Assembly (NCBI GenBank): GCA_950097015.1
Contig: CATNEN010000008.1
Span: 2,852,001 to 2,916,000, forward strand
From: Macrostomum hystrix
Taxonomy: Eukaryota; Animalia; Platyhelminthes
Direction of reading: 5' to 3'
Length of the DNA stretch: 64,000 nt
Each line of letters starts with the position of its first letter. Position 1 is the stretch's first letter. Positions 23,446 through 61,300 of the stretch are shown here, piece after piece. The notes beneath the pieces were generated by a model. It saw only the letters and a program-made list of their open reading frames with translations, had not been told where the DNA came from and did no database searches. The position numbers were made by a program, and so were the translations under genes.

Positions 23446-23594
23446 CTGAGTTTGATTGTTGAGACAGTTGCTGATAATCGGTTTGTATCTTCACTCAATC
23501 CTGACTCGGCTTTAATTAATACCAAAAATCTACTTAAAATTCTCAAACACTAAAATCTGAGATCTCCATAGCCGAAAATCTCATCGAAGAATAT

Positions 23595-31637: not shown

Positions 31638-31775
31638 TCAGGTTACGTAGACCCCAGCAGCAGCGATCTCCAGCTTGTACTCAGAGTTCTCATACTCAGT
31701 GGCGGGGTCGAGCGGCCCACCTGGCGTCGCAGCCGGCTGTCCGGCCTCAGCAGCAGTTTCTCCGCATCGGCTCAC
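31638..31775 (-). CDS. Gene A last exon, cytoplasmic tail ...PATEYENSEYKLEIAAAGVYVT*
   Basis: Phase-0 acceptor ctccag|GTG. The three-Tyr motif is conserved in gene C. Confidence 0.85.
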   Translation of the reverse strand: MSRCGETAAEAGQPAATPGGPLDPATEYENSEYKLEIAAAGVYVT

Positions 31776-34700: not shown

Positions 34701-37700
34701 CCTTGATACTTTCAGCAGCTTGTCAGAGGATCTGGGGTCATTGGGAAACTCACACAGCACGGAGACTGTGGTCGACAAACTGCGGTCACTGGAGCCGAGT
34801 CTGCAAGTGTACTTTCCAGAATGGACAGGCTGCGCTTTGCTAATCAGCAGCGTTTGATTTTCTGAGCACCTGCCATCTGGAGAGCAGATCCGCATCTGGC
34901 CTGAGTCTGTGCTCAAATCGGTGACATTGCAGTGCAGCTCGCAGCTCACAGTGAAGCTGGAGCTCTCAGCCACCAGCTGAGGACTCGCGACTCCTGCGGT
35001 TGTCAGGAGCGGGAAGAGCTCTGTTGAAGCATTGCGGTTTTCAGTCTCGACTATTTTAGCTCTGACTTCTTGGATTGAAAACTCATAGTATTGTTTAGAC
35101 ACCATAGAAGCTAACTTAATAGAATTGCATTGACAGTATCAAAGCTAACTCAATCCAATTGCATAGACACTATCAAAGCTAACTCAATCCAATTGCATGG
35201 ACAGTATCAAAGCTAACTCAATCCAATTGCATAGACACTATCAAAGCTAACTCAATCCAATTGCATAGACACTATCAAAGCTAACTCAATCCAATTGCAT
35301 AGACACTATCAAAGCTAACTCAATCCAATTGCATAGACACTATCAAAGCTAACTCAATCCAATTGCATAGACAGTATCAAAGCTAACTCAATCCAATTGC
35401 ATAGACACTATCAAAGCTAACTCAATCCAATTGCATAGACACTATCAAAGCTAACTCAATCCAATTGCATAGACACTATCAAAGCTAACTCAATCCAATT
35501 GCATAGACACTATCAAAGCTAACTCAATCCAATTGCATAGACAGTATCAAAGCTAACTCAATCCAATTGCATAGACACTATCAAAGCTAACTCAATCCAA
35601 TTGCATAGACAGTATCAAAGCTAACTCAATCCAATTGCATAGACACTATCAAAGCTAACTCAATCCAATTGCATAGACAGTATCAAAGCTAACTCAATCC
35701 AATTGCATAGACACTATCAAAGCTAACTCAATCCAATTGCATAGACAGTATCAAAGCTAACTCAATCCAATTGCATAGACAGTATCAAAGCTAACTCAAT
35801 CCAATTGCATAGACACTATCAAAGCTAACTCAATCCAATTGCATAGACACTATCAAAGCTAACTCAATCCAATTGCATAGAAACTATCAAAGCTAACTCA
35901 ATCCAATTGCATAGACACTATCAAAGCTAACTCAATCCAATTGCATAGACACTATCAAAGCTAACTCAATCCAATTGCATAGACAGTATCAAAGCTAACT
36001 CAATCCAATTGCATAGAAACTATCAAAGCTAACTCAATCCAATTGCATAGACAGTATCAAAGCTAACTCAATCCAATTGCATAGACACTATCAAAGCTAA
36101 CTCAATCCAATTGCATAGACAGTATCAAAGCTAACTCAATCCAATTGCATAGACACTATCAAAGCTAACTCAATCCAATTGCATAGACAGTATCAAAGCT
36201 AACTCAATCCAATTGCATGGACACTATCAAAGCTAACTCAATCCAATTGCATAGACAGTATCAAAGCTAACTCAATCCAATTGCATAGACACTATCAAAG
36301 CTAACTCAATCCAATTGCATAGACACTTTCAAAGCTAACTCAATAGAATTGCATCGACACTATCAAAGCTAACTCAACTGAAAATTTAGGCAAGGCAAAG
36401 AAAAAATTGAAATGATTAATTACTTATCGATACTGTCTCAACTATGAGGTCCGCAAAGCTCATGTATTGATCGTTCTCAGCTTTCGCATTCGCAGCCCGT
36501 CTCAAAAGCAGCTGTCGCACCTGCAGTTCAGAGATTCATTCACCGGTGTGTCTGCAATAATTAATTGGCATTGCTTCACTCACTCACTCACCTCAGCAAC
36601 GCAGCTGACAGTGAAGATTTCACCTGCTGAGATTGTCCCTTCCTTCCGAGTCTGGCCGCACAGTCTCCAGAGACTCCTAGACTCATTGAACAGTCTGCTC
36701 ATGGTCTTCGAGGCGCAGTGGTCGCCAGAGAAGATGGCCTTGCTGCTGCTTGAAGTGAAGATATCTATGCTCCGTGCTCTCTTGTAGGCATCGTGATACT
36801 CACCTGCATCTGAAATTCCGAGTTCGTTTCGAGTTGCTTCGACCCAACTCCACAACCTTCATTTATTGACCAAGGACTACTGGAATAGACTAACTACTAA
36901 CTAACTCATACTACTACCAGTACTAGCTAACTACTTGGTCCTTCTTGTTGTCTCGAAATCCGAAAATATCGCAATGTTGTTTTATTAAAGAAGTAGAAAA
37001 CAGCATCCCTATTGGCCCGCGCAATAAATAATTATACTTGACAACACTCAAATTAGTTTTGCAGTCCTTAATTTAAAATCTGAGTCCCTCATTAACTGCT
37101 CAAATCTTTCTTTAATTGCATTCAGCGAAACAAAAAAAATTTCTATTTCACAAATTTTACTTTCTGAAGATCACTTGAAGATCTTCTTTGATTAGAAAAA
37201 GGCAATGGTGACATTGTGTAGACTTTCACTCACCACTCCTGCCCACCACAGTGACTGATCTGATGAGAACTGGCTCAGCCAGCTGCACTGCGAACCAGTG
37301 AAATCCTCCGTCTGCTTGGCTCTGCTCAGAGCTGTGGAAGAACCACCATTTGCCCCCAGCTTGTCTATCCACCTCTGCATCTCGGGGATGAAAACAAGTG
37401 GAAGGGTGATCTGTAAAGTAGGATGACTGCCAAGATGCCAATATGCGGCTTCTGCGGATCGCGAATTTACCTGCAGTTTAAATTAGGAGAGAAAAGTTTT
37501 TGTCATTGAAAAGTGCACCAGAAAGCATGGCGAGATGTTCGCTTGACACGAAACGGCCTTAAACGAATTCTTAACAGAATGACTACTCACACACAACTGA
37601 GACTGAAGCTGACTTCACCGCCCTGCCGAATCTGCAACTATAGTTCCCGGAGTGCCAGGGCTGCGCGTTCGTGACATTCAGCAGCTGGCCTCGGACGCAG

Positions 37701-40557
37701 CTGCCAGTCGGAGGGCACAGCTGCAGATGACTCGAGTTGCAGCTCAGATCCGAGGCATTGCAGTGCAGTGAGCACCTCACCGAGAACTGGCTGCTCACAG
37801 GCAACAGTTGGTCTGGCGATGAAGCTGAAATATAGTTTAAGGATATGAAGGCCTTGGACTGTGAGCAGTCAGTTCTATTCTGAAAGTCAGGAGAAGGTGA
37901 TGAAGCTGAAATATTGGTTAGGGATATGAAGGCCTTGGATTGTGAGCAGTCAGTTCTATTCTGAAAGTCAGGAGAAGGTGACGAAGCTGAAATATTGGTT
38001 AGGGATATGAAGGCCTTGGACTGTGAGCAGTCAGTTCTATTCTGAAAGTCAGGAGAAGGTGATGAAGCTGAAATATTGGTTAGGGATATGAAGGCCTTGG
38101 ATTGTGAGCAGTCAGTTCTATTCTGAAAGTCAGGAGAAGGTGACGAAGCTGAAATATTGGTTAGGGATATGAAGGCCTTGGACTGTGAGCAGTCAGTTCT
38201 ATTCTGAAAGTCAGGAGAAGGTGATGAAGCTTACACAGCACGGTGACAAACGATCGAACTTCCGCTGACTGATGCCTGCATCGGTACAAGCCGGAGTGTG
38301 AGGGTCGAGCCCTAGCTATCCTGATTGAGGAGCCTGGAGCAAGGCTGTCGTCAGGAAAGAAGAGCTGCAGAAGCTTCTGGGAGTCGGCAGTGTCATTGAA
38401 GTGCAGCACGCAGTCCAGTCCCAGACTCGACTTCTCGGCAACAACTTGATCCGGAGTCAGAGCTGCAGATGGCCAGTGAGTTTCTATGAGCACTGCACCA
38501 CAGGTAAAATGCATTGTAAATAGAGTTCACTCACTGAGCACACTGACACGGCTCACAGCGACTGCTGAGTCCAGTCTGCACTCATAGCTCCCTGACTGGG
38601 CTGCAGCCACGGCATCGATCCGGAGCGTGGCGTCATCGATGCAGCTGTTGCTAGGAGAGCACAGCCGCGGTCGCCCGAGTTGACCAAAGTCAGCACAATG
38701 AGTTGCATTACCGCAGTGCAGAGAGCAGCTCAGACTGATACTGGAGTTCTCAGCGACCACTTGATGGGGAGTGGAAGCTGGAGAGGAGGGGCTCGAGAAT
38801 GTAAATGCTATCCATAATCTCAAAACAGCACTTTAAAGAGTACTCATCTGAGAATGTGAGCACTCACACAGAACGGTGACGGCAGTCGGTATCGCCAAAG
38901 GACCAGCCCTGCAAGTGTAGACTCCTGAGTCCCCAGGCTGAGCTTGAGCAACTTCCAGCCGGTTCTCAGAGATGCAGCTGCCGTTCGGAGGGCAGAGCCG
39001 CAGGTCGCTTGAGCTCGTGCTCAGCTGCTGCGAGCCGGTGCAGCGCCTTGAGCAGCTCACTGTGAAGCTGGAGTTCTCAGCCACCAGCTCAGGACTCTCC
39101 GCCCCTGGAAGGCGGATGGCGTAATTGAATGAACTCATGCAATGCCAGTTCCCTGCTACATCTCCAAAAACTGCCAAATGAACTCATGCAATGCCAGTTC
39201 CCTGCTACATCTCCAAAACCTGCCGAATGAACTCATGCAATGCCAGTTCCCTGCTGCATCTCCAAAAACTTCCAAATGAACTCATGCAATGCCAGTTCCC
39301 TGCTGCATCTCCAAAAACTGCCGAATGAACTCATGCAATGCCAGTTCCCTGCTGCATCTCCAAAAACTGCCGAATGAACTCATGCAATGCCAGTTCCCTG
39401 CTGCATCTCCAAAAACTGCCGAATGAACTCATGCAATGCCAGTTCCCTGCTGCATCTCCAAAAACTGCCGAATGAACTCATGCAATGCCAGTACAAAAGC
39501 TGGTTACTCAAGGACAGAGTCTGAAGGCCGAGGTCTGCGAAGCTCATGTAGCCGTCGTCTTCCGATGCATTTCTTCTGAGCAGCAAATGCCAAACCAGAA
39601 ATGCGGACTCCTCAGTGCCCTGAAACGGAGTGAAGGCCATCATTCTTGGTCTGCATGACATTGCTGATTTCAGCATTTCCCCACCTGACTGGCGCAGTCC
39701 ACGGTGAAAATTTCACCGGCTGAGATGGCTCCCTCCTTCTGAGTCTTGCCGCATCGCGTCCAGTCACTCAGGGAGTTGTGAAACTCAGCGCTGATGCTTG
39801 TGGAGCTGCAGCGGTCACCGAAGAAGATTTGACTGCTGCGGTTCGACACGAACACTTCAATGTCTTTGGCTCTGGCATAGGTACAGTTTTTGTCATCTGC
39901 AATTGAGAAGCCAGACCTGCTCAATCGTCTCAAAGTGGCATTCTTAGTGTTTTGAGACTAGATCTCTGAGCTGAAAAGAGAATGTGACTCACCCTCTCTG
40001 CCCTTCACAGTTACCGATCTGACAAGCACTGGCTTTCGAAGCTTCACAGCGAACCAGTGAAACCCGCTGCGTGATTGGCTTTTGCCATCACTGTGGAAAA
40101 AGTTATAACTTTTTGTTTTATCATTCAACTCCTCTGATTCCAAAGACTCGCTTTTGTTGTGGAAGCACGAGTTCAGGAAGCTGGAGGACTGCCATGCGCT
40201 GGTAGTGTGCTTCTTCCTAACTCGAAAGTCGCCTAAAATTTATTATTTGTGAATGGCTGAGATTTGGTTAAGGATACGGAGGCCTTGGATTGTGAGCAGT
40301 CAGTTCTATTCTGAAAGTCAGGAGAAGGTGACGAAGCTGGAGGCTGGATGACTGCCATGCACTGGTAGTGTACTTCTTCCTAACTCGAAAGTCGCCTAAA
40401 GTTTATCAAGCAGGCCACGATTGGTAAATGGCTGAGATTTGTAGCTAGAGTGAGCTTGGAGTACTGAGAATCCCACTCTGAGAATAGACTCACAGTCTGC
40501 AGCGGCTCTGGCACACACAGATCCCAGCAGAAGGAGAATCAATGACGCTGTCGCCAT
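31638..40557 (-). CDS. Receptor gene A: SP-[F-type-lectin-like + 4 Ig]x2 + 2 split Ig-like stalk domains + TM + Tyr tail (about 1341 aa, 21 exons)
   Basis: Exons: 40557-40494 (SP MATASLILLLLGSVCARAAAD). Lectin 1: 40232-39993, 39896-39685, 39619-39508. Ig: 39104-38868, 38777-38535, 38462-38235, 37824-37591. Lectin 2: 37470-37234, 36809-36592, 36520-36424. Ig: 34993-34754, 34628-34395, 34081-33857, 33777-33535. Stalk: 33049-32886, 32800-32623, 32508-32342. Stalk+TM: 32271-32011. Tail: 31908-31855, 31775-31638. All introns are GT-AG with matching phases. The total is 4026 nt with no internal stop. Confidence 0.85.
33150..33390 (-). mobile_element. Probable second tRNA-derived SINE in the gene A intron between Ig8 and the stalk
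   Basis: Minus-strand head GCAGTTAGAGCGTCGGACTCCTGGCCAAGAGGTCCGAAGTTCGAATC is tRNA-like with a B box GTTCGAATC. The body extent is approximate. Confidence 0.5.
35130..36375. repeat. 34-bp minisatellite TATCAAAGCTAACTCAATCCAATTGCATAGACAC (gene A intron)
   Basis: Highly homogeneous units. Confidence 0.95.
37821..38230. repeat. 81-bp x5 tandem repeat spanning the 3' splice site of gene A Ig4
   Basis: Units start at 37821, 37902, 37983, 38064 and 38145. Each contains atatttcag|CTTC on the minus strand. Confidence 0.9.
39127..39490. repeat. 49-bp minisatellite (gene A intron between lectin 1 and Ig1)
   Basis: GAATGAACTCATGCAATGCCAGTTCCCTGCTGCATCTCCAAAAACTGCC, about 7.5 copies. Confidence 0.95.
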
Positions 40558-44142: not shown

Positions 44143-44283
44143 TCAGTCGCCCACAGCAACAATCTCAATGTACTCGGTGCAGCAGTCGCTGTCTGTGTCC
44201 TGCCCCCCCGCAGCAGCAGCAGCAGCAGTCGCTGGTTTGCACACAGTCAAGTAGCAGCACTCGGACTCGAAGCCGCTGGTTGT
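44143..44283 (-). CDS. Gene B last exon: TTSGFESECCYLTVCKPATAAAAAAGGQDTDSDCCTEYIEIVAVGD*
   Basis: Acceptor ctctgatttcag|ACA, phase 0. Contains YLTV (YxxV) and TEYIEI (TxYxxI). Confidence 0.8.
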   Translation of the reverse strand, partial: TTSGFESECCYLTVCKPATAAAAAAGGQDTDSDCCTEYIEIVAVGD

Positions 44284-47200
44284 CTGAAATCAGAGCAGCC
44301 TTGAGCACTCATTCAGTTTCGGAGAAAAACTAAAAAAACTGCTGACAAGTGACCATTAAAAGTGAGATTTATGAATAAGCAACGTGGCATTTTTCTTGGA
44401 CAGGACAGTCCCTGTTTGTTCGCTGAAGTCTAAGTGACTCATTGACTCACCTCATTGGCTGGACGAAACACATCAGGTGACACTTTAGATTTGTCCTGAA
44501 TGCCTGAGCTCAGCCTGAGCCCGGCTGCTGAAGGCTCAGTTGACGGCACTCGGAGCTGCAATGGAAAGGTTCAGAGCCGTCAGCTGCGGAAGGGCACGAT
44601 CGCCACATTTTCCTGCACTGACCTTCGAGATGAGCAGACAGCATGCAGCGCCGACTAGCACAACAACGAAAACGATGGTGGCTGAGACAGCAATCGTGAA
44701 AGTCGTGAGCCCAGCCCCAGGGCAGTCGAGTCGAGCCGTCGCGTAAACAGGTGAGCCGAAAGTCATGTTCTCAGGGAGGTTCTGTACCGCACTGCAGTTG
44801 ACAAAGACTTCGCTCCTGCTCATGTCATGCTCGACATCGCTGTCGAGCGTCCACGTGCTAAGGAGGCCCATGTTGACTGACACCTGCAGTTTCATTTGGT
44901 CCAGTGTGTTGCGTTGCGAGTGTTGTGTTACAGTGTGTTTCAAGAATCATACGGAATGCAACTCACCTGTGAAAGCAGAGAGACTTTTTTTCCCTTGAGT
45001 TCGGCAGCTTGAAAGTTGCACGTGTGCTCAGGCAGTGGGTGAGAAGCCGATGATCTGAACTGTACAGTTATTCTTGCCATGCTTTTGCAGCTTTCCAGGA
45101 ATTTTATCGAGAGACTCGATGGCGGGTCTGGAGGGAATTTGAGGTGCTGTCACAAATTGCGGCTGAAATATTTGTCATGAGTAAATATGAAAAAAATTCT
45201 AGATGCTCACTCACAGAACACGGTGACTGAGGTCTGCCTGCTGACAGAGCCAAGGCTGCAAGAGTAATTTCCTGAGTGCTCAGGGAGTGCTCGAGCCACT
45301 ACTATATTGTGTTCTGCAATGCAGGTACCGTTAGGAAGGTAGAGCTGGAGCCCGCTAGAGTTTGAGCACAGCTGTGAGCTGTTGCAGTGCAGCTCGCATC
45401 TCACTGCGAAACTCGAGTTGACGGCCACCACCTGATCCGCGGAGGCCGCTGAAAGAATATTTTGACCAGCTTGCATGATAATCAGATAAACTAATAGCGA
45501 TCGAATGCATTTTATGTGACTGAAGTCTCTGTGACGAGTAAATGGTACGGATGCACTCAGAGGCAGTGGAATCTAGTATATATGTGGAGTGAGTTTATCA
45601 ACGAGTCATGAATTCCATGAGTCATAGTTGATGGTCAAATTGGCCATTGGTGTTTCAATTGACTTGGGGTTTTGCCACCATGCCGTGGGCATTGTGTCAG
45701 TTAAGGTTTTGTGCTGGGGGCATTGTGTCAGCTGAGGTTTTGTGCTGTGGAAATTGTGTCAGCTGAGGTTTTGTGCTGTGGAAATTGTGTCAGTTGATGT
45801 TTTGTGCTGTGGACATTGTGTCAGCTGAGGTTTTGTGCTGTGGAAATTGTGTCAGTTGATGTTTTGTGCTGTGGACATTGTGTCAGCTGAGGTTTTGTGC
45901 TGTGGAAATTGTGTCAGTTGATGTTTTGTGCTGTGGACATTGTGTCAGCTGAGGTTTTGTGCTGTGGACATTGTGTCAGTTGAGGTTTTGTGATGTGGAC
46001 ATTGTGTCAGCTGAGGTTTTGTGCTGTGGGCATTGTGTCAGCTGAGGTTTTGTGCTGTGGACATTGTGTCAGCTGAGGTTTTGTGCTGTGGACATTGTGT
46101 CAGCTGAGGTTTTGTGCTGTGGACATTGTGTCAGTTGATGTTTTGTGCTGTGGACATTGTGTCAGCTGAGGTTTTGTGCTGTGGACATTGTGTCAGCTGA
46201 GATTTTGTGCTGTGGACATTGTGTCAGTTGATGTTTTGTGCTGTGGACATTGTGTCAGCTGAGGTTTTGTGCTGTGGACATTGTGTCAGTTGGGGTTTTG
46301 TGGTGTGTGCTTTTTACTTTTGACCTTTTTCAACTTATATTGTAGTTCAATAAACAATATTTTTTGGTGTTATTACACCATTGACACCTTTGCTTGTGTC
46401 ATTAATTATGTTTCTTTCTCTTATAATTTATTATTGTTTTTGCATTCAGCTTTCGACCTTCGTCATTGGATGAATTTTCCCCTGACCAGTTTCTGCTTTT
46501 TGGTTTTCATTGTTTCACTAATTGGTCCAAGCGACAAATTGAAGCGCAAAATGTCCCGCTTTCGGGCCCTTATTATTCTTTAAAAGTTACGAGCATAAAA
46601 AAAGTAGAAAATCTGCTCACAGAGCACGGTGACTGAGGTCTGCTTGCTGACAGAACCAAGGCTGCAAGAGTACTTTCCAGAGTGATCAGGCAGAGCTTGA
46701 GCCACTGCTGTCTTGTGTTCTGCAATGCAGGTACCGTTCGGAAGGCAGAGCTGGAGTCCGCTAGAGTTTGAGCACAGCTGTGAGCGGTTGCAGTGCAGCT
46801 CGCAGCTCACAGTGAAATTCGAGTTGATGGCCACCACCTGATCCACGGAGGCCGCTGAAAAATATAAGTTACCATTGAAATTTCGAACTCAAATTGTGCA
46901 CTTACTGTTTGAGAAATTACTTTAACATTAAACTCACTCAGCACACTGACACTGGATGTGTTCGCGACCGAGCCGAATCTGCACCTGTAGTCACCTGAGT
47001 GCTCAGGCTGAGCACTGCCAATGTGCAGCTCATGGCCGTTTATGCAGCTGTCGTTGGGAGAGCACAGCTGCAGCTCGCTTGAGCTCGAGTTGAGCTCTGC
47101 TCCATCGCAGTCCAGCAAGCAGCTCACGCTGAACTTTGAGCTCTGAGGCACCAGCTGAGGTGCTGAGGACTCTGGAGATTTACAAATCATCCAATCGACA

Positions 47201-48129
47201 TTGCTAAATCATCGAAATTTAAGAATTTCCCTTCCACAACAATGTGTCCATAGTAAAAGACCCGAACTCACTCAGCTGCACAGTCTGAAGCCTGAGATCT
47301 GCGAAGCTCATGAAGTCGGTAGGATAAGATGACACAGTGATGTTCCTTCGCAGCAGCAAGTGTCTCACCTGGAGTTCAGATGAGATCTCAGTGGGATCCA
47401 GAACTCAACAGAGCACAACTCAAGGCACAGAGCAGGTCTCACCTCCGCTGAGCAGTTCACGGTGAAGTTCTCACCAGCCTCGATACGCGCCTGCTTGCTC
47501 ACCGTCAGGCCGCACAGTCTCCAGAGCTGCTGAGACTTGTTAAACTGGCTGCTCATGTTTCTTGAGCTGCAGTGATCACCTGAGAACAGCTGACTGCTGC
47601 TGCTCGATGTCCAGATCTCGATGTCTCTGGCTCTCGCGTAGACATCTGTAGCGCTATCTAAAAGTGAGAACTTCACGACTAAGCAGTGGAAGCTGAAGTG
47701 CATGGAAAAAATTGAGCAGTGACTCACCCTCTCTGCCCTTCACAGTGACCGATCTGATGAGCACTGACTCATTCAGCTGCACTGCGAACCAATGAAATTC
47801 TCCGTCTGCATGGTCTTTGTTTTTGCTGTGGAAGAACCTGTAGCTGTAAGGTTTGTCCTTTACAACGTTTTCCTCATCAGTGTAGTTTCTGTTGCTGAAG
47901 CAAGTCGGTCCGTCATCGAAGGACGACTGCCAGGAGCTGAGCACTCGGCTCCTGCGAATCAGGAACTCACCTGCAGTGTGTGAAAATGGAGTGCTGTAAT
48001 GCCTTCAAACATTTTTTAGTTGAAACTGAAAACAAAACTAAAACACTCACAGTCACCCATGACGCCAGTCATTGCTGAGAAGAGCAGCAACAGCAGCAGC
48101 AGCAGTCGTATGAGCAAAGCAGATACCAT
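44143..48129 (-). CDS. Receptor gene B: SP + F-type-lectin-like + 3 Ig + split Ig-like stalk + TM + ITIM-like/ITSM tail (about 667 aa, 11 exons)
   Basis: Exons: 48129-48051 (SP MVSALLIRLLLLLLLLFSAMTGVMGD). Lectin: 47970-47728, 47657-47443, 47368-47272. Ig: 47171-46938, 46854-46621, 45448-45215. Stalk: 45127-44967. Stalk+TM: 44883-44623 (TM LTTFTIAVSATIVFVVVLVGAACCLLI). Tail: 44555-44451, 44283-44143. The total is 2004 nt with matching phases and no internal stop. Confidence 0.87.
45708..46290. repeat. 31-bp minisatellite TTGTGTCAGCTGAGGTTTTGTGCTGTGGACA (gene B intron between Ig2 and Ig3)
   Basis: Read directly. Confidence 0.95.
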
Positions 48130-49672
48130 CTGAGCTCAGTATGCAATCCGCTAGAGAATAGTCTCACAAAACTTTCTGAGCAGTCTTCAATTCGCACTGC
48201 CTGCAATTCAGTTCTTTTCCGCTACTTAAGCAAGTGGCGGGTAAGACGTCAATGCTGCTTACCTCTCGGCCTGAGATTTACAAGCCGAAAGTTCTAAATT
48301 TGCTGTCTCAGCACTTTAAATATCCAGCAATATGTTTCTCGCTAAGTAAACCAATTCATACTCCGGCTATTTCTTGTAAGACAGGCAGTGAAATAATAGA
48401 ATATTTGACGCCTATTATTGGAGAAATGACCCTGAAAGTGTTGTTTATTGCATGTGTCGCTTGACTGACCAGCTGAAGCAGCTAGTTTCCAGGGCTACTT
48501 GGCTTGAAATGCGGCAAATGATGAGTCTGTCGTTGAAGAGATTGAGCAACTGAAGATGTGAATTGTTTCATCATGACACTTGTCATTCTCGTAGAACATT
48601 ATAAGAAGCATGTCTCGCTTCTTGAATGAGCTCATTCCATCGGCTGGTCTCCTCTTTCATGCTCACTTTTTGTGCGGGTGAAATTTTGAATCTCTCGGCT
48701 ATAAAACGCGACTTGACTACAACAGTCATTAACAAGTTCGCTGTCAGGTTCTGTGCAGCGTCTCAAGCAGTGCTTTTTCACTGCAAATTCATGCCCGAAA
48801 TGGGATATTAAACTTTAAAGCAGTACCTCATTTCATGAACTTGTACCCCATCCAGCAGTTTAAAAAAATTGAAAATCCATTATCCACAGTGCCATCTTCT
48901 GCTGGCCATTTAAAGTTATTTGCTCACGACGATCAGTCACAACACAACTCGCGCGTATATAAAAAGTACATGAATTAAATGTTTTAGTATGCTAAAATAT
49001 CGTCTACTCGTAATAATGTATTCGTCTTTTCGTCAGCATTATTTGACAGTCAAATAAAAAAGCAAATTAATTGCAGATCTTTTTTACCTCCCGAGTAATA
49101 CCCCAAATCGGCCAAGTAGTACCCAATGGGTACTGGTAAAAAACCCTGGTCTCAAGCCTCGATGCCTCGATGCCTCAATGGCACGAATAAAGATTGAGCA
49201 ATTGTCAGCCAGCAGACAGTCGACAAAACGCCGAGTTCGAATCTGTCAGCGTCGGTAAGCTTCTCATGCACCGGCTGCGCACAACATCGACTTGCTGTAC
49301 GGCGGCACGACTGTACAACGACTTCGGTCAGAGACGGACGCAAAGGTATGGCGCGAAGGTATGGGTCATGGCGTACACACAACCAATGAGGAAAAGGCAG
49401 CAGATCAGCGCAAAGCATCATTTGTCTAACTTTGCGAAGGTGAGAGCACTATCTAGCAGTTTATTATTGTATGAAATGTAGGCTCGATGCAGAGAGTACC
49501 AGTTTTAGTATAAGTTTATAGCATTTGATAGTGATGTACAATTTATTTTGTTAAAATAAAGCTCTAGCTTTATTCAGCAACTGCACGCGATCAGTTAGTT
49601 CAGTATTGTAATGAATTTCCGAATATTGCATTCGAATATTGCTAGATATGTTAGATATTTCAAGGTTTTACA

Positions 49673-50645
49673 GGATATGGAAGCTAGTGCTGGATATGGA
49701 AGCTAGTGCTGGATATGGAAGCTAGTGCTGGATATGGAAGCTAGTGCTGGATATGGAAGCTAGTGCTGGATATGGAAGCTAGTGCTGGATATGGTAGATA
49801 GTCCTGGATATGGAAGCTAGTGCTGGATATGGAAGCTAGTGCTGGATATGGAAGCTAGTGCTGGATATGGAAGCTAGTGCTGGATATGGAAGCTAGTGCT
49901 GGATATGGTAGATAGTCCTGGATATGGAAGCTAGTGCTGGATATGGTAGATAGTCCTGGATATGGAAGCTAGTGCTGGATATGGAAGCTAGTGCTGGATA
50001 TGGAAGCTAGTGCTGGATATGGTAGATAGTCCTGGATATGGAAGCTAGTGCTGGATATGGTAGATAGTCCTGGATATGGAAGCTAGTGCTGGATATGGAA
50101 GCTAGTGCTGGATATGGTAGATAGTCCTGGATATGGAAGCTAGTGCTGGATATGGAAGCTAGTGCTGGATATGGTAGATAGTCCTGGATATGGAAGCTAG
50201 TGCTGGATATGGTAGATAGTGCTGGATATGGTAGATAGTCCTGGATATGGAAGCTAGTGCTGGATATGGTAGATAGTGCTGGATATGGAAGCTAGTGCTG
50301 GATATGGTAGATAGTGCTGGATATGGTAGATGGTGCTGGATATGGTAGATGGTGCTGGATATGGTAGATAGTGCTGGATATGGTAGATAGTGCTGGATAT
50401 GGTAGATGGTGCTGGATATGGTAGATGGTGCTGGATATGGTAGATGGTGCTGGATATGGTAGATGGTGCTGGATATGGTAGACAGTGCTGGATATGGTAG
50501 ATAGTGCTGGATATGGTAGATGGTGCTGGATATGGTAGATGGTGCTGGATATGGTAGATGGTGCTGGATATGGTAGATGGTGCTGGATATGGTAGATAGT
50601 GCTGGATATGGTAGATAGTGCTGGATATGGTAGACAGTGCTGGAT
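49673..50645. repeat. 19-bp minisatellite TGGATATGG(AAGC/TAGA)TAGTGC
   Basis: Read directly. Explains the YPALSTISSTIYHIQH ORFs. Confidence 0.95.
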
Positions 50646-50759
50646 ACTGCTGACATGAACAGAAGCACTCAGCACTATATTGTGATTGTGATGGTGCGGC
50701 TTCATGACCTGTTGTGTTCAAGCCCGCTCATAACACTGCTTAAATACTGAAGAACCATA

Positions 50760-51370
50760 TCCATCTCAAGGCTGATCATATCCACCTCAAGGCTGCTCAT
50801 ATTCTCCTCAAGGCTGCTCATATCCACCTCAAGGCTGCTCATATCCACCTCAAGGCTGATCATATCCACCTCAAGGCTGATCATATCCACCTCAAGGCTG
50901 ATCATATCCACCTCAAGGCTGATCATATCCACCTCAAGGCTGATCATATCCACCTCAAGGCTGCTCATACCCACCTCAAGGCTGCTCATGCCCACCCCAA
51001 TACTGCTCATATCCACCTGAATGCTGCTCATACCCACCTCAAGGCTGCTCATACCCACCTCAAGGCTGCTCATTCCCACCTCAAGGCTGCTCATACCCAC
51101 CTCAAGGCTGCTCATACCCACCCCAATACTGCTCATATCCACCTGAATGCTGCTCATACCCACCTCAAGGCTGCTCATACCCACCTCAAGGCTGCTCATT
51201 CCCACCTCAAGGCTGCTCATACCCACCTCAAGGCTGCTCATACCCACCTCAAGGCTGCTCATACCCACCTCAAGGCTGCTCATACCCACCTCAAGGCTGC
51301 TCATACCCACTCCAATACTGCTCATATCCACCTGAATGCTGCTCATACCCACCTCAAGGCTGCTCATATT
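50760..51370. repeat. 21-bp minisatellite ATCCACCTCAAGGCTGCTCAT
   Basis: Read directly. Explains the MSSLEVG ORF. Confidence 0.95.
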
Positions 51371-52149
51371 CACCTAGAAGCTGCTCGTGTCTACAATTTA
51401 AGAGTAGGGCATTGTTTGTCAGTTCAGCGTATCTTGAAATTATCACTCCTCATGCAGGCAACGACCTTCGATCAGGTCACATAAACTCCAGCTGCGGTCT
51501 CCAGCTTGTACTCAGAGTTCTCATACTCTGTGACGCCATCCGCAGATCCAGCAGCACCAGCTACGAGTTCGGCGTCAACTGTCCGTGTCCCGTCTCGACC
51601 CACCTGAAGTACAAGAGGGTCAGCTGCAACAATTGACTTGAGCAAATATTTCTACAGACACAAAACTCTCATCTCATGACAGTCAGCTCACCATGCCGAT
51701 CATCTCAGCCGCACGGTGACTTGGGTCCAGGCGAGGTTGTCCCCAGCAGAACTGAGCAGTCTGAGAGCCCCTGGCTGCTGCCACCTGAAATAGCTTTAAG
51801 AGTTTGAGAATCTTCTGACTTCAGCACAGACAGCAAACTGGAGCACTGCATTGAGGGCTCACTCTGCAGAACACGCAGGCCATGACGACCGCAGTGACGA
51901 ATCCTGACCCGAATCCAGAGGCGAAGTACTTCAGTCCGTCGTTCTCTTCAGGCAGCCCGGATGTCGGAGAACAGCTGAGCTGAGCTCTGGCACTGCGGAC
52001 GGCCTTAAACGGAACTCCTGTCGGCAGAGTCTGAGTAGCTGTGCAAACGATGCTGAGAACACTGCTCAGTTCCTCACTAGGGACATCGAGCTCTGCGAGT
52101 GACCACAGGCTGACGGCGCCTTCCATGCCTGATTGCTGAAACACCGAGT

Positions 52150-52350
52150 TACTCAGTGAGTCATCGATCAGTCATCCAATGAGTCATCGGTCAGTCACTC
52201 AATGAGTCATTGGTCAGTCACTCAGTGAGTCATTGGTCAGTCACTCAGTGAGTCATTGGTCAGTCACTCAGTGAGTCATTGGTCAGTCACTCAGTGAGTC
52301 ATTGGTCAGTCACTCAGTGAGTCATTGGTCAGTCACTCAGTGAGTCATCG
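52150..52350. repeat. 23-bp minisatellite TCAGTCACTCAGTGAGTCATTGG (continues at 56088-56250 beyond the retrotransposon)
   Basis: The same unit flanks both sides of the gypsy element. Each unit contains TGAGTCA. Confidence 0.9.
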
Positions 52351-55300
52351 TGTTGTGTAGTGATTGAAGTAGAAAACAGATTTTTTTTAGATTCCAAATC
52401 GAGAAGCTTTGAGAGCTTATGGTCGCTCTGTTGCCGTATATTTATAGGCTAGGATGTTAGATATCGAAGGTTCTAGAAATATTCCAGGTGCTGCCGTCGG
52501 TCAGTCGGCACGCAGCGCCCATCGTCTTGACAATCCGCAGCGGCACCGAGAGCCGCGTTCCGAGCTTGCCCCGTCGTGTTGGACGCTGCACCCGAACCCA
52601 GTCGCCGGCGCGCAGTGCGGTCCGTGTAGGCTGCCGTCCGCTGCTGGCGCCCTTGGATTTGCTGGGCCATCTCGGTATGCGCAACCGCGGTGTCCTTAGA
52701 CGGGGACAGGAGAGACAGGGCTGTGCGCCATCGCCTGCCCAGCATCAGCTCCGCCGGGCTCTTCCCAGTCTGGGCATGTGGAGTGCTGCGGTAAGCCTCA
52801 AGGAACTGCAGCAGCGCGTCTTGCATCGGAATGTTCGCCGCCCTGGCCGCTCGGATGCTGTCCATCAGCGTCCTGTTGAGTGTCTCGGTCTTGCCGTTGG
52901 TGCTTGGACGGTAAGGGCTGGTCTTCAGGTGCTGAATGCCCCTGAATACCTCAGAAATCCATCGCCGAACTGTGCTCCGTTGTCGGTGAGGACCTTCTCG
53001 CAGAGGCCCCAGCGTGCGAAAAGGCTGCGCAGCACCTTGCAGATCGTCTCAGTGGTGATGCTTGAAGTTGCAAAGACCTCTGGCCACTTGCTGTGCAGAT
53101 CCGTAATGACCAGTAGGACACGTGATGGTGCCGGTGCCGCCTGCAGCTCGCCCACGATGTCGATGGCGATCTCTGTCTACGGTGTAGTCGGCCATGGCAG
53201 AGGCTGCAGCGGAGCCGGTCGCAGCTTGAAATTCTTCTCCGCTGTCTCGCACGCGCCGCAGTCCCGGACGAACGTCTCGACATCGGCGTCCATCTTTGGC
53301 CACCAGGCGAACTCGAGGAGCTGCTGCTTGCTGCTGCTGCACCACCCCCGGATGTCCAGAATGCACCGCCTCCAGAAGCTCGCGCCGCAGCTGCTGGGGA
53401 ATGATGGCTCGTTCTTGGAAAGCCAGGCAGGCGCCGTCCTGCCAGACGCTGAGGTGCTCGCGGACCTTGAAGTACGGCCGCAGCTCGCTATGCGGTGTAG
53501 AGCTCCAGTTGCCGCTTGTGACGTGCTGAATCACCTGTCGCAGAACCTCATCCTCGGCTGTGGCTATCGCTAGCTGCTGCGGGGTAACAACCCGTACCTT
53601 AGGCATCGCAGTCCGGTAGCTGGACGATGTTCATGTCGGACCCGCAGCTCCACCTTGACAGCATGTCGGGCACGAAGTTGCGGTTGCCCGGCAGGTATCG
53701 CACGTGGAAGTCGTACTGTTGAAACCGGTCGCACCACCGTTGGATGCGCAGCGGCCGATGTCCGGTGCCGCTGGGTCCCAGCAGGAGCTGGCGCAGCGCT
53801 TGGTGGTCGGTCCGCAGCTCGAAATGGCGCCCGTACAGGTAGTAGTGCCACTTCTCCATGGCCCTCAGGATCGCCAGCGCTTCTCGCTCGTTCGCTGCGT
53901 ATCGCTTCTCTGTCTCGGTCAGGTCTCGGGCGGCGAAGGCAATCGGCCTCTCGATGCCGTCTTGGACCAGGGACAGCTGCGCACCGAGGGACTCTGCACT
54001 GGCGTCGCTAGTGAAGATCGTCTCGGCCCCTGGGTCGAAGTGAGCAAGGACCGGCGGACTACAGATAGCCTCTTTCAGCGTCTCGATCGCCTTCTCGCAC
54101 TCCGTCGACCATTCGAACACCGCGTCGCCTTTCAGCAGAGGCCGCAGTGGCGCCGTGACCTCAGCGAAGTTGGGTACGAACCGCATCAGATAGTTGGCGG
54201 ATCCCAGGAACGCCTGCAGCTCCTTCCTGTTGGTCGGCGGGCGCAGCTGGCTGAAAGCTTTGGTCTGACTCTCAGACGGTCGCATGCCGTCGGCTGAGAA
54301 GATGAAGCCAAAGAACTCAATCTCAGTCCTCCGCAGCTGGCACTTGTCCTTGTTGGCAGTGAGACCGGCGTCCTCCAATCGCTTCAGCAGTGCTCGCAGC
54401 CTCGAGTCGTGCTCGGCTTCAGTTGCTCCGAAGACGATGAAGTCGTCCAGGATGTGCTCAACACCGTGCAGATCAGACACCAGGTCGTCCAGCGTCCTCT
54501 GGAATGCCGCCGGTGCCGAAGCAAGCCCGAACGGAACCCTGCAGTAGCGATACAGACCCTGGTGAGTAATGAATGCCGTCAGGTCACGTGATGACTCGTG
54601 CAGCTTCATCTGCATGTATCCTGCCTTGATGTCGATCTTGAAGAACACGCTGCCTCCGACAGCTTTGATCTTGGCCGAGATTTCGTCCAGCTGCGGCATC
54701 GGGTGCCTCCAGACGGTTCAGCTCCTCGCCGACTTGTTGCTGCCTAGTGAGCGGAAGTCGACGGAGCGGCTGCTGCACTGGTGGCACCGCTGCGTTGATC
54801 CTCGGTTTGTGCAATGCGCCCTTGCAGAGACCGATCGAGCCGCTGAAGACAGTTGGGAACTCTCGCTCGATGTCTACGCTGGCGATTTCGGCGTCGATCT
54901 CAGCTGGCGGCTGCAGTTGCACGTGGAAGCCCAGCTTCTCCATCAGGTCGCGGCCGATAAGGTTCTCGCCAGACCTCGTGACGTGGAAGTCGTGCTGCCG
55001 ACTGTGGTGCTTGACGGGCACTGTTGCGATCCCAGCTAGGGCGATCAGCTTCCTGCCGTAGCCTCATCGACGACGGTCTTAGGCGAATGTCGCCCAAGCT
55101 TCGCGCAGTGGCCTCGTTCAGCAGGGACACCATGGCACCGCAGTCGACCATCAGGCTGACGATCTTTCAAATGCTGCCAAGCAGAAGCTCGGCGCGGAAC
55201 TCGTCGTTGCCGTTGACTGCGTAGATCGTCTCTTCCGCGCTGACCTGCATTGCATTGCTGCGGCAGCATCAGCTGAAGTGATTCAGTTTGCCGCAGTTGT

Positions 55301-56088
55301 TGCACTTCTTGCCGTGCGCGGGACATTGGGCTTCGGAATCATGGCTGCGGCCGCATCGCTGGCAGGATCCTCCGGCTTGCTGCCCCGGCTTCTTCTTGGA
55401 CGGAGCGCCATGGTGACCTCGGGGTCAGGCCTCCTGCACAGCCTGGACGTTCCCTGAAGAGCCGGCTGCTGCCATCGCCTTGCTGCCTGCCGCTGCCTCC
55501 TCGATAGTCGTCGCGATCACGATGGCTTGGTCCAGTGTCAGCCTGGCGGCGTCCTCAGTCAGCAGGCGCTCACTAATCCGGCTGCTGCTGGTCTTCTGGG
55601 CCAGCTGGTCGCGGATCATCTCGTCAGTCATTGCTCCGTAGTTGCAGGTTGCTGAGAGCTCGCGCAGTGCTGCGACGAACGTGACTGCGTCCTCTCCGGG
55701 CAGCTGATGTCGCTCCCGGAAATCGGTGACGCGCCAACATCACGTTTGGCCTGTCGCCAAACACAGTCGTCAGCAGGTCGCGGGTTTGCCAGAAGGTGTG
55801 GCCGTCGACAATCGCGTTGTGTGCCCCTGGCAATCCGCTGCCCTTCGAAACCGAGCAGGTGCAGCAGCATGTTGGGGCTCCTCTTTGCCAGTCGCGTAGC
55901 TTCCTCTGTTGGAGCTTCGCCCTCTGCCGGCCATCAGTCCAGATCTGCGCCGCTTGGCAATAGATATCGAAAGTGTCGAGCCATCGATTCCATGGAACTG
56001 CTGGAGGTCCGCTTGCCGGCAGGTACGGTGTCGGTGGGCTAACGTTGAGGGCCATCCTCGTCGCCAGTTGTTGTGTAGTGAATGAAGT
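52351..56088 (-). mobile_element. Degenerate Ty3/gypsy LTR retrotransposon (gag-PR-RT-RH-INT) in a gene C intron
   Basis: The LTR 3' end ...CACTACACAACA occurs at both 56069-56088 and 52351-52370. PBS TGGCGACGAGG is at 56056-56066 and gag ATG at 56055. Motifs: protease LMVDCGA; RT KIDIKAGY...PFGLASAPAAFQR...ILDD; RNase H TSDAS...EREALA; integrase HSGHPG, DLHSKWPEV, LTDNGAQF. There are several frameshifts, an RT N-terminal deletion and both LTRs are truncated. Confidence 0.92.
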
Positions 56089-58377
56089 CATTGGTCATTC
56101 ATTGGTCAGTCATCGAATGAGTCATTGGTCATTCATTGGTCAGTCATCGAATGAGTCATTGGTCAGTCACTCAATGAGTCATCGGTCAGTCACTCAATGA
56201 GTCATCGGTCAGTCAGACAGTGAGTCATCGGTCAGTCACTCAGTGAGTCATTGTTTAGTAATTCACTGAGTGCATTGAAACCCACCTGTGAAATGAGTCG
56301 CAGTGATTTCTTACGGACTACTCCAACATCACAGCTGCAGCTGTGCTCAGGCATGGGCTGAGCAGCTGAGGATCTGAACAGCACGGATGCGTTTAAAAGA
56401 TTCTTGCAATTCGCATTGTTGGGCAACGACAATAAAATTGACACACTCGATGGTGGGTCTGCATGTGAGGTAAATATTTTCATTAGATTTTGAAAGCAAT
56501 GTTGCAGATGGAAGTCATGCAGCTAACTCACAGAGCACGGTGACTGAGGTCTGCTTGCTGACAGAACCAAGGCTGCAAGAGTACTTTCCAGAGTGATCAG
56601 GCAGAGCTTGAGCCACTGCTGTCTTGTGTTCTGCAATGCAGGTACCGTTCGGAAGGCAGAGCTGGAGTCCGCTAGAGTTTGAGCACAGCTGTGAGTTGTT
56701 GCAGTGCAGCTCGCAGCTCACAGTGAAATTCGAGTTGATGGCCACCACCTGAGCCACGGAGGCCGCTGAAAAATTTAAGTTACCATTGAAATTTCGAACT
56801 CAAATTGTGCACTTCCTGCTTGAGAAATTACTTTAATATTAAACTCACTCAGCACACTGACACTGGATGTGTTCGCAACCGAGCCGAATCTGCACCTGTA
56901 GTCACCTGAGTGCTCAGGCTGAGCACTGCCAATGTGCAGCTCATGGCCGTTTATGCAGCTGTCGTTGGGAGAGCACAGCTGCAGCTCGCTTGAGCTCGAG
57001 TTGAGTTCTGCTCCATCGCATTCCAGCCAGCAGCTCACGCTGAACTTTGAGCTCTGAGGCACCAGCTGAGGCGCTGAGGTTTCTGGAGATTTACAAATCC
57101 TCCAATCGACATTGCTAAATCATCGAAATTTTAGAATTTCCCTTCCACAACAATGTGTCCAAAGTAAAAGACCCGAACTCACTCAGCTGCACAGTCTGAA
57201 GCCTGAGATCTGCGAAGCTCATGTAGTCCTCATAGCTGGAGAAGTCGCTTGCTGTGATGTTCCTTCGCAGCAGCAAGTGTCTGACCTGGAGTTCAGATGA
57301 GATCTCAGTGGGATCCAGAACTCAACAGAGCACAACTCAAGGCACAGAGCAGGTCTCACCTCCGCTGAGCAGTTCACGGTGAAGATCTCACCACGCTGGA
57401 TTTGCTGCTGCTTGCTCACCGTCAGGCCGAGACTTGTTAAACTGGCTGCTCATGTTTGTTGAGCTGCAGTGATCACCTGAGAACAGCTGACTGCTGCTGC
57501 TCGATATCCAGATCTCGATGTCTCTGGCTCTCGGGTAGACTTCTGTAGCTCTATCTAAAAGTGAGAACTTCACGACTAAGCAGTGGAAGCTGAAGTGCAT
57601 GGAAAAAATTGAGCAGTGACTCACCCTCTCTGCCCTTCACAGTGACCGATCTGATGAGCACTGACTCATTCAGCTGCACTGCGAACCAATGAAATCCTCC
57701 GTCTGCTTGGCTTCTGTCTGTGCTGGAGAAGAACCTGTAGCTGTAAGGTTTGTCCTTTACAACGTTTTCCTCATTGGCGTAGCTTCTGTTGCTGAAGCAA
57801 GTCGGTCCGTCATCGAAGGACGACTGCCAGGAGCTGAGCACTCGGCTCCTGCGAATCGGCAACTCACAGTCTGCAGTTGCCATGGAAATAGGCAGTGCTA
57901 GGAGCAGTAGAAGCATTGTGGACTTGGCCAATTCTAGAATCTTGAAATCAGTAAATATTTGTGCTGCTGAAATCAACCCAGAAATGAAAGCGGATTCACT
58001 AACGGCCTATTTGAATGAATCGGCACCTGCGATATGATTTGATGATCCAGAGAGTAACACTGTTCACTGCGAATCTAATAAAAGGCTGACGAGGATCTAA
58101 ATGAAGCTCGCCTATACCTGGTGAAGCAGTTTCCGTACATCAAACCTTCTAGAAGTTCCTCAGTCATAATTGGCACAATCTGCTTTATTTCGAAGCTTGG
58201 ACCACAAATAGTAACAGGATATTGTGACGGTTTCTTAACTTTGTTTATTGCTGATTGCAGTGGACTAGTTTGGATACCGAAGATGGCTGAATGTTAGCAT
58301 TGTTGAGCCTTTCTTAACGCTATTGAAATCATTTGAGGATGTGTGAAACTCCACTAATTGTGGCAGGCTAGCTATGA

Positions 58378-61300
58378 GTGCGGTATTGTAGGGATGGGTG
58401 CAGTATTGTAGGGATGGGTGCAGTATTGTAGGGATGGGTGCAGTATTGTAGGGATGGGTGCAGTATTGTAGGGATGGGTGCAGTATTGTAGGGATGGGTG
58501 CAGTATTATAGGGATGGGTGCAGTATTATAGGGATGAGTGCAGTATTGTAGGGATGGGTGCAGTATTGTAGGGATGAGTGCAGTATTGTAGGGATGGGTA
58601 CATTATTGTAGGGATGACTGCAGTATTGTAGGGATGGGTACATTATTGTAGGGATGACTGCAGTATTGTAGGGATGAGTGCAGTATTGTAGGGATGGGTG
58701 CAGTATTGTAGGGATGGGTGCAGTATTGTAGGGATGGGTGCAGTATTGTAGGGATGGGTACATTATTGTAGGGATGAGTGCAGTATTGTAGGGATGGGTG
58801 CAGTATTGTAGGGATGGGTGCAGTATTGTAGGGATGGGTGCAGTATTGTAGGGATGGGTACAGTATTGTAGGCATGGGTACAGAATTGTAGGGATGAGTG
58901 CAGTATTGTAGGGATGAGTGTAGTATTATAGGGATGAGTGCAGTATTGTAGGGATGAGTGCAGTATTATAGGGATGGGTACAGTATTGTAGGGATGGGTA
59001 CAGTATTGTAGGGATAGTGCAGTATTGTAGGGATGGGTGCAGTATTGTAGGGATGGGTGCAGTATTGTAGGGATGGGTACAGTATTGTAAGGATGAGTGC
59101 AGTATTGTAGGGATGGGTGCAGTATTGTAGGGATGGGTACAGTATTGTAGGGATGAGTGCAGTATTGTAGGGATGGGTGCAGTATTGTAGGGATGGGTAC
59201 ATTATTGTAGGGATGAGTGCAGTATTGTAGGGATGGGTGCAGTATTGTAGGGATGGGTACAGTATTGTAGGGATGGGTACAGTATTGTAGGGATGAGTGC
59301 AGTATTGTAGGGATGGGTGTAGTATTGTAGGGATGAGTGTAGTATTGTAGGGATGGGTGCAGTATTGTAGGGATGGTTGTAGTATTGTAGGGATGAGTGC
59401 AGTATTGTAGGGATGGGTGCAGTATTGTAGGGATATATATATATATAGACGCAAAAAGTTAGGTAGCTTTTGCGCGCACGCGCTCGCAGAACAGTCGGGA
59501 GGGGCAGGCCATGGCGGACTGGGGATCAAGTCCGATAGCCTGCAAGTCAGCCAACAGAGTGGTAATTAGCGTCACAGTTCTTCCTTGGCCGCGGCGCAGC
59601 CGCTCGGTCGGTTGGTGCAGGAGGACCAGCGCAAGCGGGTTTCGCTCGCCGCGACCGTGGCTCCTCAGACAGTGGCCCAGCAGCATCTGGCGGCGCCGGC
59701 GCAGGGTGACGCTCAGGGCTGGGACGCCGGCGCGAACCATCAGGTCTCTGGACGGCAGCCTCTCCGGGTAGTGCACGCCCAGGGCGTGGCGCAGCAGGGA
59801 CCTGTATAGCGCGTCCAGGGCTTTCTCTCGCGTGGCGGTCATCGGCACTGCTTCCATGCCGTACAGAAGGATAGGCTCAACGGCAGCGCGGAAGAGGCGC
59901 ACCTTCAGGCTGTCTCTTGCAGCAGAGTTGAAGACGTTCCTGAGAAGGTGCGCCGCACGCCAGGCCTGATTCCTTCTGTCGGAGACGATGGAGTCGGGAC
60001 TCATCACCAGGGAGCCGAGGTACCGAAAGTCCTCGCACACCGCGATGGCGTCTCCGTTGGGCAGATCTAGTGCCGGGGCGGTATCAGTGCCCACGTGCAG
60101 CACTTCTGTCTTCAGTGCGTTGATCATCAGTCCAACCCGAGCGCCCTCCTCGCAGAGTCTTAAGAGAGCGCGTTGGGCAGCAGCTGGATCGCGACAGAGG
60201 AATGCGATGTCGTCGGCATACGCAAGAGCCGGCAGCGGGACTGCAGGGTGTCGGGAGCTTCGACGTGGGACTAGCACATAGCCGTCGTCATCATGGAGAG
60301 ACCGGCGCAGCACGTAGTCCACGACCATGATGAAAAGCAGAGGAGCCAGCGTGTCGCCCTGAAGGACGCCAGAGCTTGTGCTGAACTCATCAGTGGGGCC
60401 GTCGCTCGACTGAACAAATGCCCTGGAATCGCTGTACAGATCCATCACCGCAGCCACCAGTGCAGGGGGGACGCCGTAGTAGGACAGCAGCCATGCAATC
60501 GCTAGCCTGGCCACCGAGTCAAAAGCCTTCCGGAAATCCACGAAGACAATCGACACGGAGCGCAGGCGGGTCTTGCAGGCCTCAATGATTGAGCGGATGG
60601 TTGCAACCTGCTCAGTGGTGGACCTGCCTGGCCGAAAACCGCTCTGGAGACTCAGCAGCAGTGGGTTGAGACCTGGCAGGAGGCGGTTGCGCAGCACAGC
60701 ATTCAGCAACTTTGCCGTGGTACATTCCAGCGCAATGCCACGCTGGTTGTCCAGGCTTGTAGAAGCCCCCTTCTTCGGGATGGAAACGATCTTGGAGGTG
60801 CGCCATTGTGGGGGCGCGCAGGCGGCCGCGTCGCCTCCAAGACTGCAGTGCTTGTTCAGCACCTCGGTGATGGCGGGGGTCAGCTCTGGTAGCTTCAGGA
60901 CCCTGGGAGGAATCGTATCCACCCCAGCAGCGGCGTCGGCACGCATGGTCCTCAGAGCCCGGCCAGTATTGTAGGGATGGGTGCAGTATTGTAGGGATGG
61001 GTACATTATTGTAGGGATGGGTACAGTATTGTAAGGATGAGTGCAGTATTGTAGGGATGGGTGCAGTATTGTAGGGATGGGTGCAGTATTGTAGGGATGG
61101 GTGCAGTATTGTAGGGATGGGTGCAGTATTGTAGGGATGGGTGCAGTATTGTAGGGATGGGTGCAGTATTGTAGGGATGGGTGCAGTATTGTAGGGATGG
61201 GTGCAGTATTGTAGGGATGGGTGCAGTATTGTAGGGATGGGTGCAGTATTGTAGGGATGGGTGCAGTATTGTAGGGATGGGTGCAGTATTGTAGGGATGG

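Follow-up and report, generated by a model that had tools for sequence, protein, structure and literature searches.

Multigene families of immune-type receptors, including KIR, Ly49 and SIRP as well as the fish NITR and the snail FREPs, are homogenised by gene conversion and diversified on their ligand face. In snake venom PLA2 and in the conotoxins, accelerated evolution of the exons is accompanied by conserved introns. Variable recognition receptors have, to our knowledge, not been described in flatworms, a group in which Macrostomum serves as an experimental model, RNAi and transgenesis being available for it. Among the F-type lectins, positive selection has been reported at binding-face sites in the F-lectin repeats of the sperm bindin of Crassostrea gigas, with similar variability in eel isoforms (PMC5712786). 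The fucose motif of these lectins is H-X24-R-X-D-X4-(R/K), with His52, Arg79 and Arg86 as the corresponding residues of AAA, and their cation motif, h2DGx, follows helix h3 (PMC5712786).

The window considered here is a stretch of 64,000 nucleotides from Macrostomum hystrix (contig CATNEN010000008.1 of assembly GCA_950097015.1, forward-strand positions 2,852,001 to 2,916,000), and all coordinates below are those of the window. It is characterised by short GT..AG introns and many minisatellites, long arrays of which, with repeat units of 8-42 nt, occupy introns and spacers throughout a receptor gene cluster (1500-5200, 10800-15600, 17200-26000, 30700-31600, 34950-36300, 45500-46450, 49500-51500 and 58240-59900). 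The genes of this cluster discussed here, designated A, B and C, lie on the minus strand. Gene C starts with an ATG at 57916, from which the frame is open through a first exon (57625..57916) that joins the signal peptide MLLLLLALPISMATAD to the lectin-like exon a (57867-57625) without an intron. This is followed by intron 1 (57624-57555; 70 nt, GT..AG), lectin-like exon b (57554-57360), intron 2 (57359-57286; 74 nt) and lectin-like exon c (57285-57183). The rest of the tract homologous to gene B (56530..57182), which supplies neutral and constrained comparators, comprises intron 3 (57182-57083), Ig exon 1 (57082-56849), intron 4 (56848-56766) and Ig exon 2 (56765-56530). Further downstream (51478..56456), gene C consists of a stalk exon (56456-56283), a stalk/TM exon (52144-51842) and a tail exon (51561-51478) encoding TEYENSEYKLETAAGVYVT. 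A retroelement occupies the intron that separates the first two of these exons (52150-56280), with an RT/RNase H open reading frame on the minus strand at 53599-54699; the fragmented reading frames adjoining it gave no Pfam match, and similar minisatellite blocks are present on both of its sides (56086-56277 and 52147-52351).

The counterpart of this gene, gene B (46619..48129), is intact. Its signal exon (48129-48051) is separate, with a 79-nt intron before exon a (47970-47728), and the splicing of this exon to exon a has been detected in one RNA-like contig (loose end at 57871). Exon b (47657-47443), exon c (47368-47272), Ig1 (47171-46938) and Ig2 (46854-46619) follow. In the C signal peptide, the letters ACTGCAG that end the corresponding intron of B are kept as coding sequence and followed by an extra ACT (57868-57916 against 47971-48129), and the B/C homology begins exactly at this point. 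Gene A is a distant paralog that serves as outgroup, with a first lectin-like domain, A1 (exons a, b and c, 39509..40230), whose dS to both B and C is about 1, and a second, A2 (36425..37468); an extra short copy of the head-exon start (DFRVRKKYTTSAWQSS) has been found upstream of A1, at 40346-40393. Two classes of tail occur on near-identical ectodomains (44100-44330 and 51478-51561). The tail of B, ..SECCYLTV..DCCTEYIEIVAVGD (..SECCYLTV..TEYIEI), resembles that of the Macrostomum lignano protein P0004, and that of C, ..TEYENSEYKLETAAGVYVT (..YENSEYKLE..GVYVT), resembles those of the database proteins P0018 and P0003 and of gene A at 31644-31766.

The exons of B and C, searched one by one, gave products matching proteins of M. 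lignano only, with which they align at 54-75% (P0002-P0008 and P0018). An exhaustive HMMER search of exon a against 1.84 billion representatives recovered nine real relatives, all of them from M. lignano except one metagenome fragment, and a word search under a length window returned one match for exon a and two for the P0018 head. Within the searches made, the head domain appears to be confined to Macrostomum, and a literature search found no paper on a Macrostomum receptor family with lectin heads and Ig domains. Both B and C show the family framework, WQSS..CF..FFHS..ADGGFHWFAVQL..VTVKGRE..W..CG..LLLRR..MSFADL in the head, followed by Ig exons, stalk, TM and tyrosine tail; the stalk, TM and tail exons were located for C and A.

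Pfam searches with the lectin exons and the family gave sub-threshold matches only (F5_F8_type_C at E 0.0084-0.44, NedA-like at 0.055), and a family profile compared with the PDB sequences gave a single weak match, the eel fucolectin 1k12 (E 0.26). The fold was modelled on the database relative P0018 (residues 20-210) with the family alignment, its head being 58-62% identical to those of B and C. The AF2 model obtained, with a pLDDT of 82 and a pTM of 0.84, has the F-lectins 3cqo and 1k12 as its top structures (Z 12.2 over 137 residues, rmsd 3.1-3.3, 19-20% identity; Foldseek E 2.8e-6 to F-lectins), with the F-lectin domain of lectinolysin at Z 11.7 and with CBM32 and F5/8-C domains tied within 1 Z. 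On this model the head is predicted to be an F-type-lectin-like jelly-roll beta-barrel, the fold of the eel fucolectin isoforms and the oyster bindin. Unlike these lectins, the Macrostomum family lacks the His-X24-Arg-X-Asp-X4-Arg/Lys motif and a Pfam match above threshold, and its domain, which is encoded by three exons, forms the head of a membrane receptor that also has Ig domains and tyrosine-motif tails. When the family profile is aligned to 1k12 (E 0.26), the His52 position is taken by Ser, or by Asp in B; at the Arg86 position, B, C and P0018, the members that were read off, have no basic residue, and the loop is longer. Arg79 aligns, within R-E-D in B, C and P0004; B and C retain Arg79-x-Asp81, and FF-H aligns with Phe45-Tyr46-His47 of AAA. 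The h2DGx motif is absent from the aligned positions 36-40, and an FDDGP is present more N-terminally, outside the aligned part. The head may bind sugar.

Self-comparison of the window aligned C 56527-57877 with B 46616-47977 on the minus strand, with 93.7% identity over 1371 columns. This shared tract of 1.35 kb extends from exon a to Ig exon 2; weaker matches of C were detected in the gene A domains at 40230-39509 and 37468-36425. The preliminary description of this locus had counted 15 substitutions among the 243 nt of exon a, changing 12 codons, all of them non-synonymous, and a recount agrees (for example FFHSKNKDHADGEF against FFSSTDRSQADGGF), with the variable patches of C at codons 2-3, 28-31 and 47-57. 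In exon b, 13 substitutions change a further 10 codons, all again replacements, a number that it had also given and that depends on reading C in the frame of B past a 20-nt deletion that had been overlooked. Over these two exons together, all 22 altered codons are replacements, and silent changes number 0 across 146 codons. Introns 1 and 2 are, as had been stated, 100% identical between the two genes. The contrast drawn there between replacement-only exons and identical introns applies to these two exons and these two introns; beyond them, exon c has three synonymous codon changes, and introns 3 and 4 together contain 7 differences in 183 nt (3/100 and 4/83, respectively). The loop of exon c, correctly described as differing in length, has the sequence NITVSSYPTDF in B; that of C, NITASDFSSYEDY, is longer by two codons, and this hypervariable segment combines the indel with 16 substitutions, some of them silent. 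Few changes, some synonymous, had been noted in the Ig exons, and these are found to differ at 10 of 470 nt (7/234 in Ig exon 1 and 3/236 in Ig exon 2), with five replacement and four synonymous codons (dN 0.017, dS 0.037). Transition and transversion counts were uninformative. Exons more diverged than the introns between them, mostly by replacement, are shared with snake venom PLA2 and the conotoxins; those are secreted toxins, whereas here loop patches of a single domain are concerned and two of the four introns differ.

About half of the B/C changes that can be polarised fall on the intact gene B, which has unusual states at the conserved sites P3L, S52D and G57E. Changes derived in C affect a near-invariant His (FFH to FFS; His47) and Thr97, both conserved sites. 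N-glycosylation sequons also move between the copies, with N-R-S in C where B has N-R-N-Y-T (47880-47890 in B, 57783-57793 in C), and with N-F-T within GENFTV in B alone, the sequence being GEIFTV in C, A1 and A2 (47470-47480).

The excess of differences in the head has been evaluated in several ways. The lectin exons differ at 44 of 535 nt, compared with 7 of 327 in the introns (Fisher p 1.5e-4) and 10 of 470 in the Ig exons (p 1.6e-5), and exons a and b taken together are 6.4% different, against 0% in their flanking introns and 2.1% in all introns. When 28 random substitutions were simulated on exons a and b, 5-6.5 synonymous codons were expected and none was observed, with a probability of zero such codons of 0.001-0.003. 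Codon-level DNA tests drew on four copies (A1, A2, B and C) with B/C as the one close pair, and a plain pairwise dN/dS test on that single pair was borderline and non-significant (dN 0.080, dS 0.017, p 0.06-0.09). With codons assigned to a variable or a conserved class on the basis of the family without B and C, the B/C pN at the family-variable codons reached 0.12-0.16 against 0.021 in the introns (p ~1e-7). The columns that vary between B and C are the most variable columns of the family, with an entropy of 1.79 against 1.20 bits (permutation p 5e-5). In the exon-a and exon-b patches, the comparison of B with C yields a pS of 0.09 and a pN of 0.35, a marginal difference (p 0.048); for the same patch codons, A1 or A2 compared with B or C gives a pS of 0.43-0.72. 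Across the longer distance from A1 and A2 to B and C, silent sites are saturated (dS ~1) and the framework dN/dS of 0.25-0.36 denotes purifying selection. The replacement-only signal in the B/C head is real.

The sites that differ have been mapped on the AF2 model of P0018, as the preliminary description had proposed. Outside the deletion, all but three of the B/C differences lie in segments of this model without regular DSSP structure. A first variable segment, at model residues 31-34, runs from the last part of a loop into the beginning of a helix, and a second, the loop at 50-60, corresponds to the CDR2/His52 stretch in AAA numbering. The loop at 84-91, modelled with low confidence, comes just after Arg79-x-Asp81 (CDR4), and further variable sites occur at residues 116 and 140-144 and in the loop 167-176. 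The variable patches are thus predicted to lie in loops whose aligned counterparts in F-type lectins are the CDR2/His52 and CDR4 regions; this placement among the pocket loops was derived from secondary structure and from an alignment that is itself weak (E 0.26). Variation between close copies that is concentrated in loops around the pocket is a second feature in common with the F-type lectins, the loops here being predicted ones. The earlier claim that the changes hit the His and the loops around the sugar pocket holds for the predicted loops; the His that changes, however, aligns with His47 of AAA, beside the CDR2 aromatics, and not with the fucose-binding His52. The variable loops would form the binding face of the head.

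Gene C had been taken as an intact gene, but its lectin head is frameshifted in the assembly. Exon b of C is without 20 nt that are present in B at 47532-47513 (CAGCAGCTCTGGAGACTGTG), and at the junction, 57430|57429, the frame shifts and runs to a TGA stop at 57390-57388, giving a product of 153 residues. The lost residues are QQLWRLC in B and include the family-conserved LWRLC motif, with its Trp and Cys; on the P0018 model, the deletion takes out one predicted strand. As QQLWRLC is conserved in A1, in A2 and in all database relatives covering that part, the deletion is derived in C. A search for a splice variant of C that keeps the whole head found none. Use of a cryptic donor, GACG|GTGAGC, spliced to exon c yields a stop, and a 24-nt intron would be too short and also yields a stop. 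Skipping of exons b and c, from exon a to Ig1, stays in frame, but no such joint has been seen for C, and half a jelly-roll would not fold. Five database models from M. lignano (P0003 and P0012-P0015) run from head exon a straight to the Ig exon (..VKGRE|ELSGPG..), in frame and phase 1 to phase 1, without exons b and c; they may represent genuine isoforms, genes in decay or faulty predictions. The other C exons checked for an open frame (Ig exons 1 and 2, stalk, stalk/TM and tail) are all unbroken. At least in the assembled haplotype, gene C is a young pseudogene or a null allele.

Contigs from four public sequencing runs of one organism have also been compared with the locus; three of these runs behave as RNA and one, run X1, is DNA-like. 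The RNA-like contigs skip intron 1 (57554>57625) and intron 4 (56765>56849) exactly, and one RNA contig has the 20 nt in the B-like form. Contigs of other copies have different sequence in place of the 14-15 nt at the start of exon b and of positions 57717-57814 of exon a, a sign that these segments vary across expressed copies. In run X1, the unique flanks of C and the exon-a patch at 57775-57787 were found at single-copy depth with 0 differences. The C states at 57506, 57132, 56775 and 56753 and the sequence at the side of the deletion were unseen in this run, in contigs, which cannot show absence. The exon-b states of C and the deletion junction have almost no contig support across the four runs (depth 5.8 against ~65), and in this sample the C allele may resemble B in exon b and beyond. 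The same run holds many copies that are at least 95% alike over the exons and introns 1-2, at a depth 10-30 times that of single-copy sequence. The upstream flank of C (57887-58000) occurs there in two forms, one identical to the window at a depth of ~60, the other with four substitutions and a 1-nt gap at ~97; the two may represent alleles or else a duplication of the locus.

Diversifying selection on the binding loops, with the family backbones kept alike by duplication or conversion, is given somewhat better than an even chance of being the right account of these data. It is the best supported reading because there are too many replacements, at family-variable positions and in predicted loops, and the replacements exceed every neutral yardstick of the tract; we infer that selection caused the B/C pattern. 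The proposal of diversifying selection on ligand specificity made earlier stands in its first part, and with the C head frameshifted in the assembly, the present ligand specificity of C is moot. B and C are tandem copies of a receptor family that searches found only in Macrostomum; each comprises a signal peptide, an F-type-lectin-like head and Ig domains, followed by a stalk, a single membrane span and a tail with tyrosine motifs. Their 1.35-kb tract would have been recently duplicated or homogenised, with a neutral divergence of about 2% and of about 0% in the two introns of the head. On this young tract, the head would have gained many replacements and almost no silent changes, clustered in a few loop patches, most likely through positive, diversifying selection on ligand-contact loops. 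Short-patch exchange among close copies may have helped, in that it would shuffle a replacement-only pattern without creating it. C would then have lost 20 nt of exon b, and with them a conserved strand and a cysteine, leaving a truncated protein.

The main rival, and a likely contributor, is the exchange of patches itself. Under patchwork (micro) gene conversion, the patches would have been copied from other family members or would have escaped homogenisation, the differences would represent older divergence between paralogs, and exon-limited homology would keep the converted tracts out of the introns. This is a possible account, to which we give clearly less than an even chance. The tight clustering of the differences is in its favour, as are the 6 of 22 changed codons with two changed bases, the indel and partly silent substitutions of the exon c loop, and the edges of the B/C tract, sharp at exon borders. 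The large family, with its many near-identical copies in run X1, also favours it, and so do the C states found in exon a in that run, in which exon b onward is B-like only wherever C states can be checked. In exon c, where silent changes, replacements and an indel occur together, the sequence looks more like a replaced segment, or else the alignment is unreliable, and exchange among close copies is likely for its loop. Conversion meets the difficulty that no donor is present in the window, the 14-mers of the patches being unique except for one run of 23 nt shared by C and A2 in an 83%-identical stretch. The second lectin domain of gene A had been put forward as the donor on the grounds that it shares SQADGGFHWF with C. 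This sequence is the family consensus, found also in A1 and P0004, and it is B (DH..GE) that is derived; the 23-nt run is the longest identity between C and A2, and a chance run would be roughly ~19 nt. Donors like A1 or A2 would, at a dS of ~1, carry silent differences, and since exons a and b have none, import from gene A is unsupported; any other donor at such a distance faces the same objection. Close donors would only move a replacement-only pattern from copy to copy without explaining it.

Relaxed constraint, by which C is a pseudogene in decay whose differences from B have accumulated neutrally, is a very unlikely explanation, and as the sole cause it is already contradicted by the contrast between introns and exons. 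It would fit the 20-nt deletion and premature stop, the presence of an RT/RNase H element in the intron that follows the stalk exon, and the changes of C at the conserved His47 and Thr97. Neutral decay, however, cannot exceed the intron rate as exons a and b do, and about six silent codon changes would be expected from it where none is seen; in addition, the share of polarisable changes that belongs to intact B and the unbroken state of the other checked C exons are at odds with it. The least probable reading is an assembly artefact, with C a chimera of near-identical paralogs or the 20-nt gap an assembly error, as might be suspected in a multi-copy family from the scarce contig support for the exon-b states and the junction, contigs being unable to show absence; it is opposed by the single-copy depth and lack of differences of the C flanks and exon-a patch in run X1 and by the clustered, in-frame, replacement-only substitutions, which differ from an error pattern.

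Taking diversifying selection as the preferred reading, the family shares with KIR, Ly49, SIRP, NITR and the FREPs a tandem multigene organisation, near-identical ectodomain backbones on different tails, frequent null or decayed copies and an excess of replacements at contact loops, which are predicted ones here. It differs from them in having no sequence relation and in the lack, in the Macrostomum receptors, of the charged TM residue that marks an activating partner. Tentatively, and with a good deal of doubt, B and C may be regarded as a snapshot of flatworm arms-race receptors: a genus-specific family of lectin-headed Ig proteins with alternative tyrosine-signalling tails, backbones kept uniform by conversion, selected sugar-contact loops and frequent null alleles, forming an independent analogue of the paired NK/myeloid receptors of vertebrates or of gamete-recognition lectins. 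For annotation, the analysis means that gene C is not intact in the present assembly. For the genus, it reveals an expanded family whose lectin-like head replaces amino acids faster than its own introns change. This would add an independent case of evolution with a homogenised scaffold and diversified contact loops, a mode already known on the F-type lectin fold from the oyster bindin and the eel lectins (PMC5712786), and it makes the family a concrete candidate for immune, allorecognition or mate/gamete recognition in Macrostomum.
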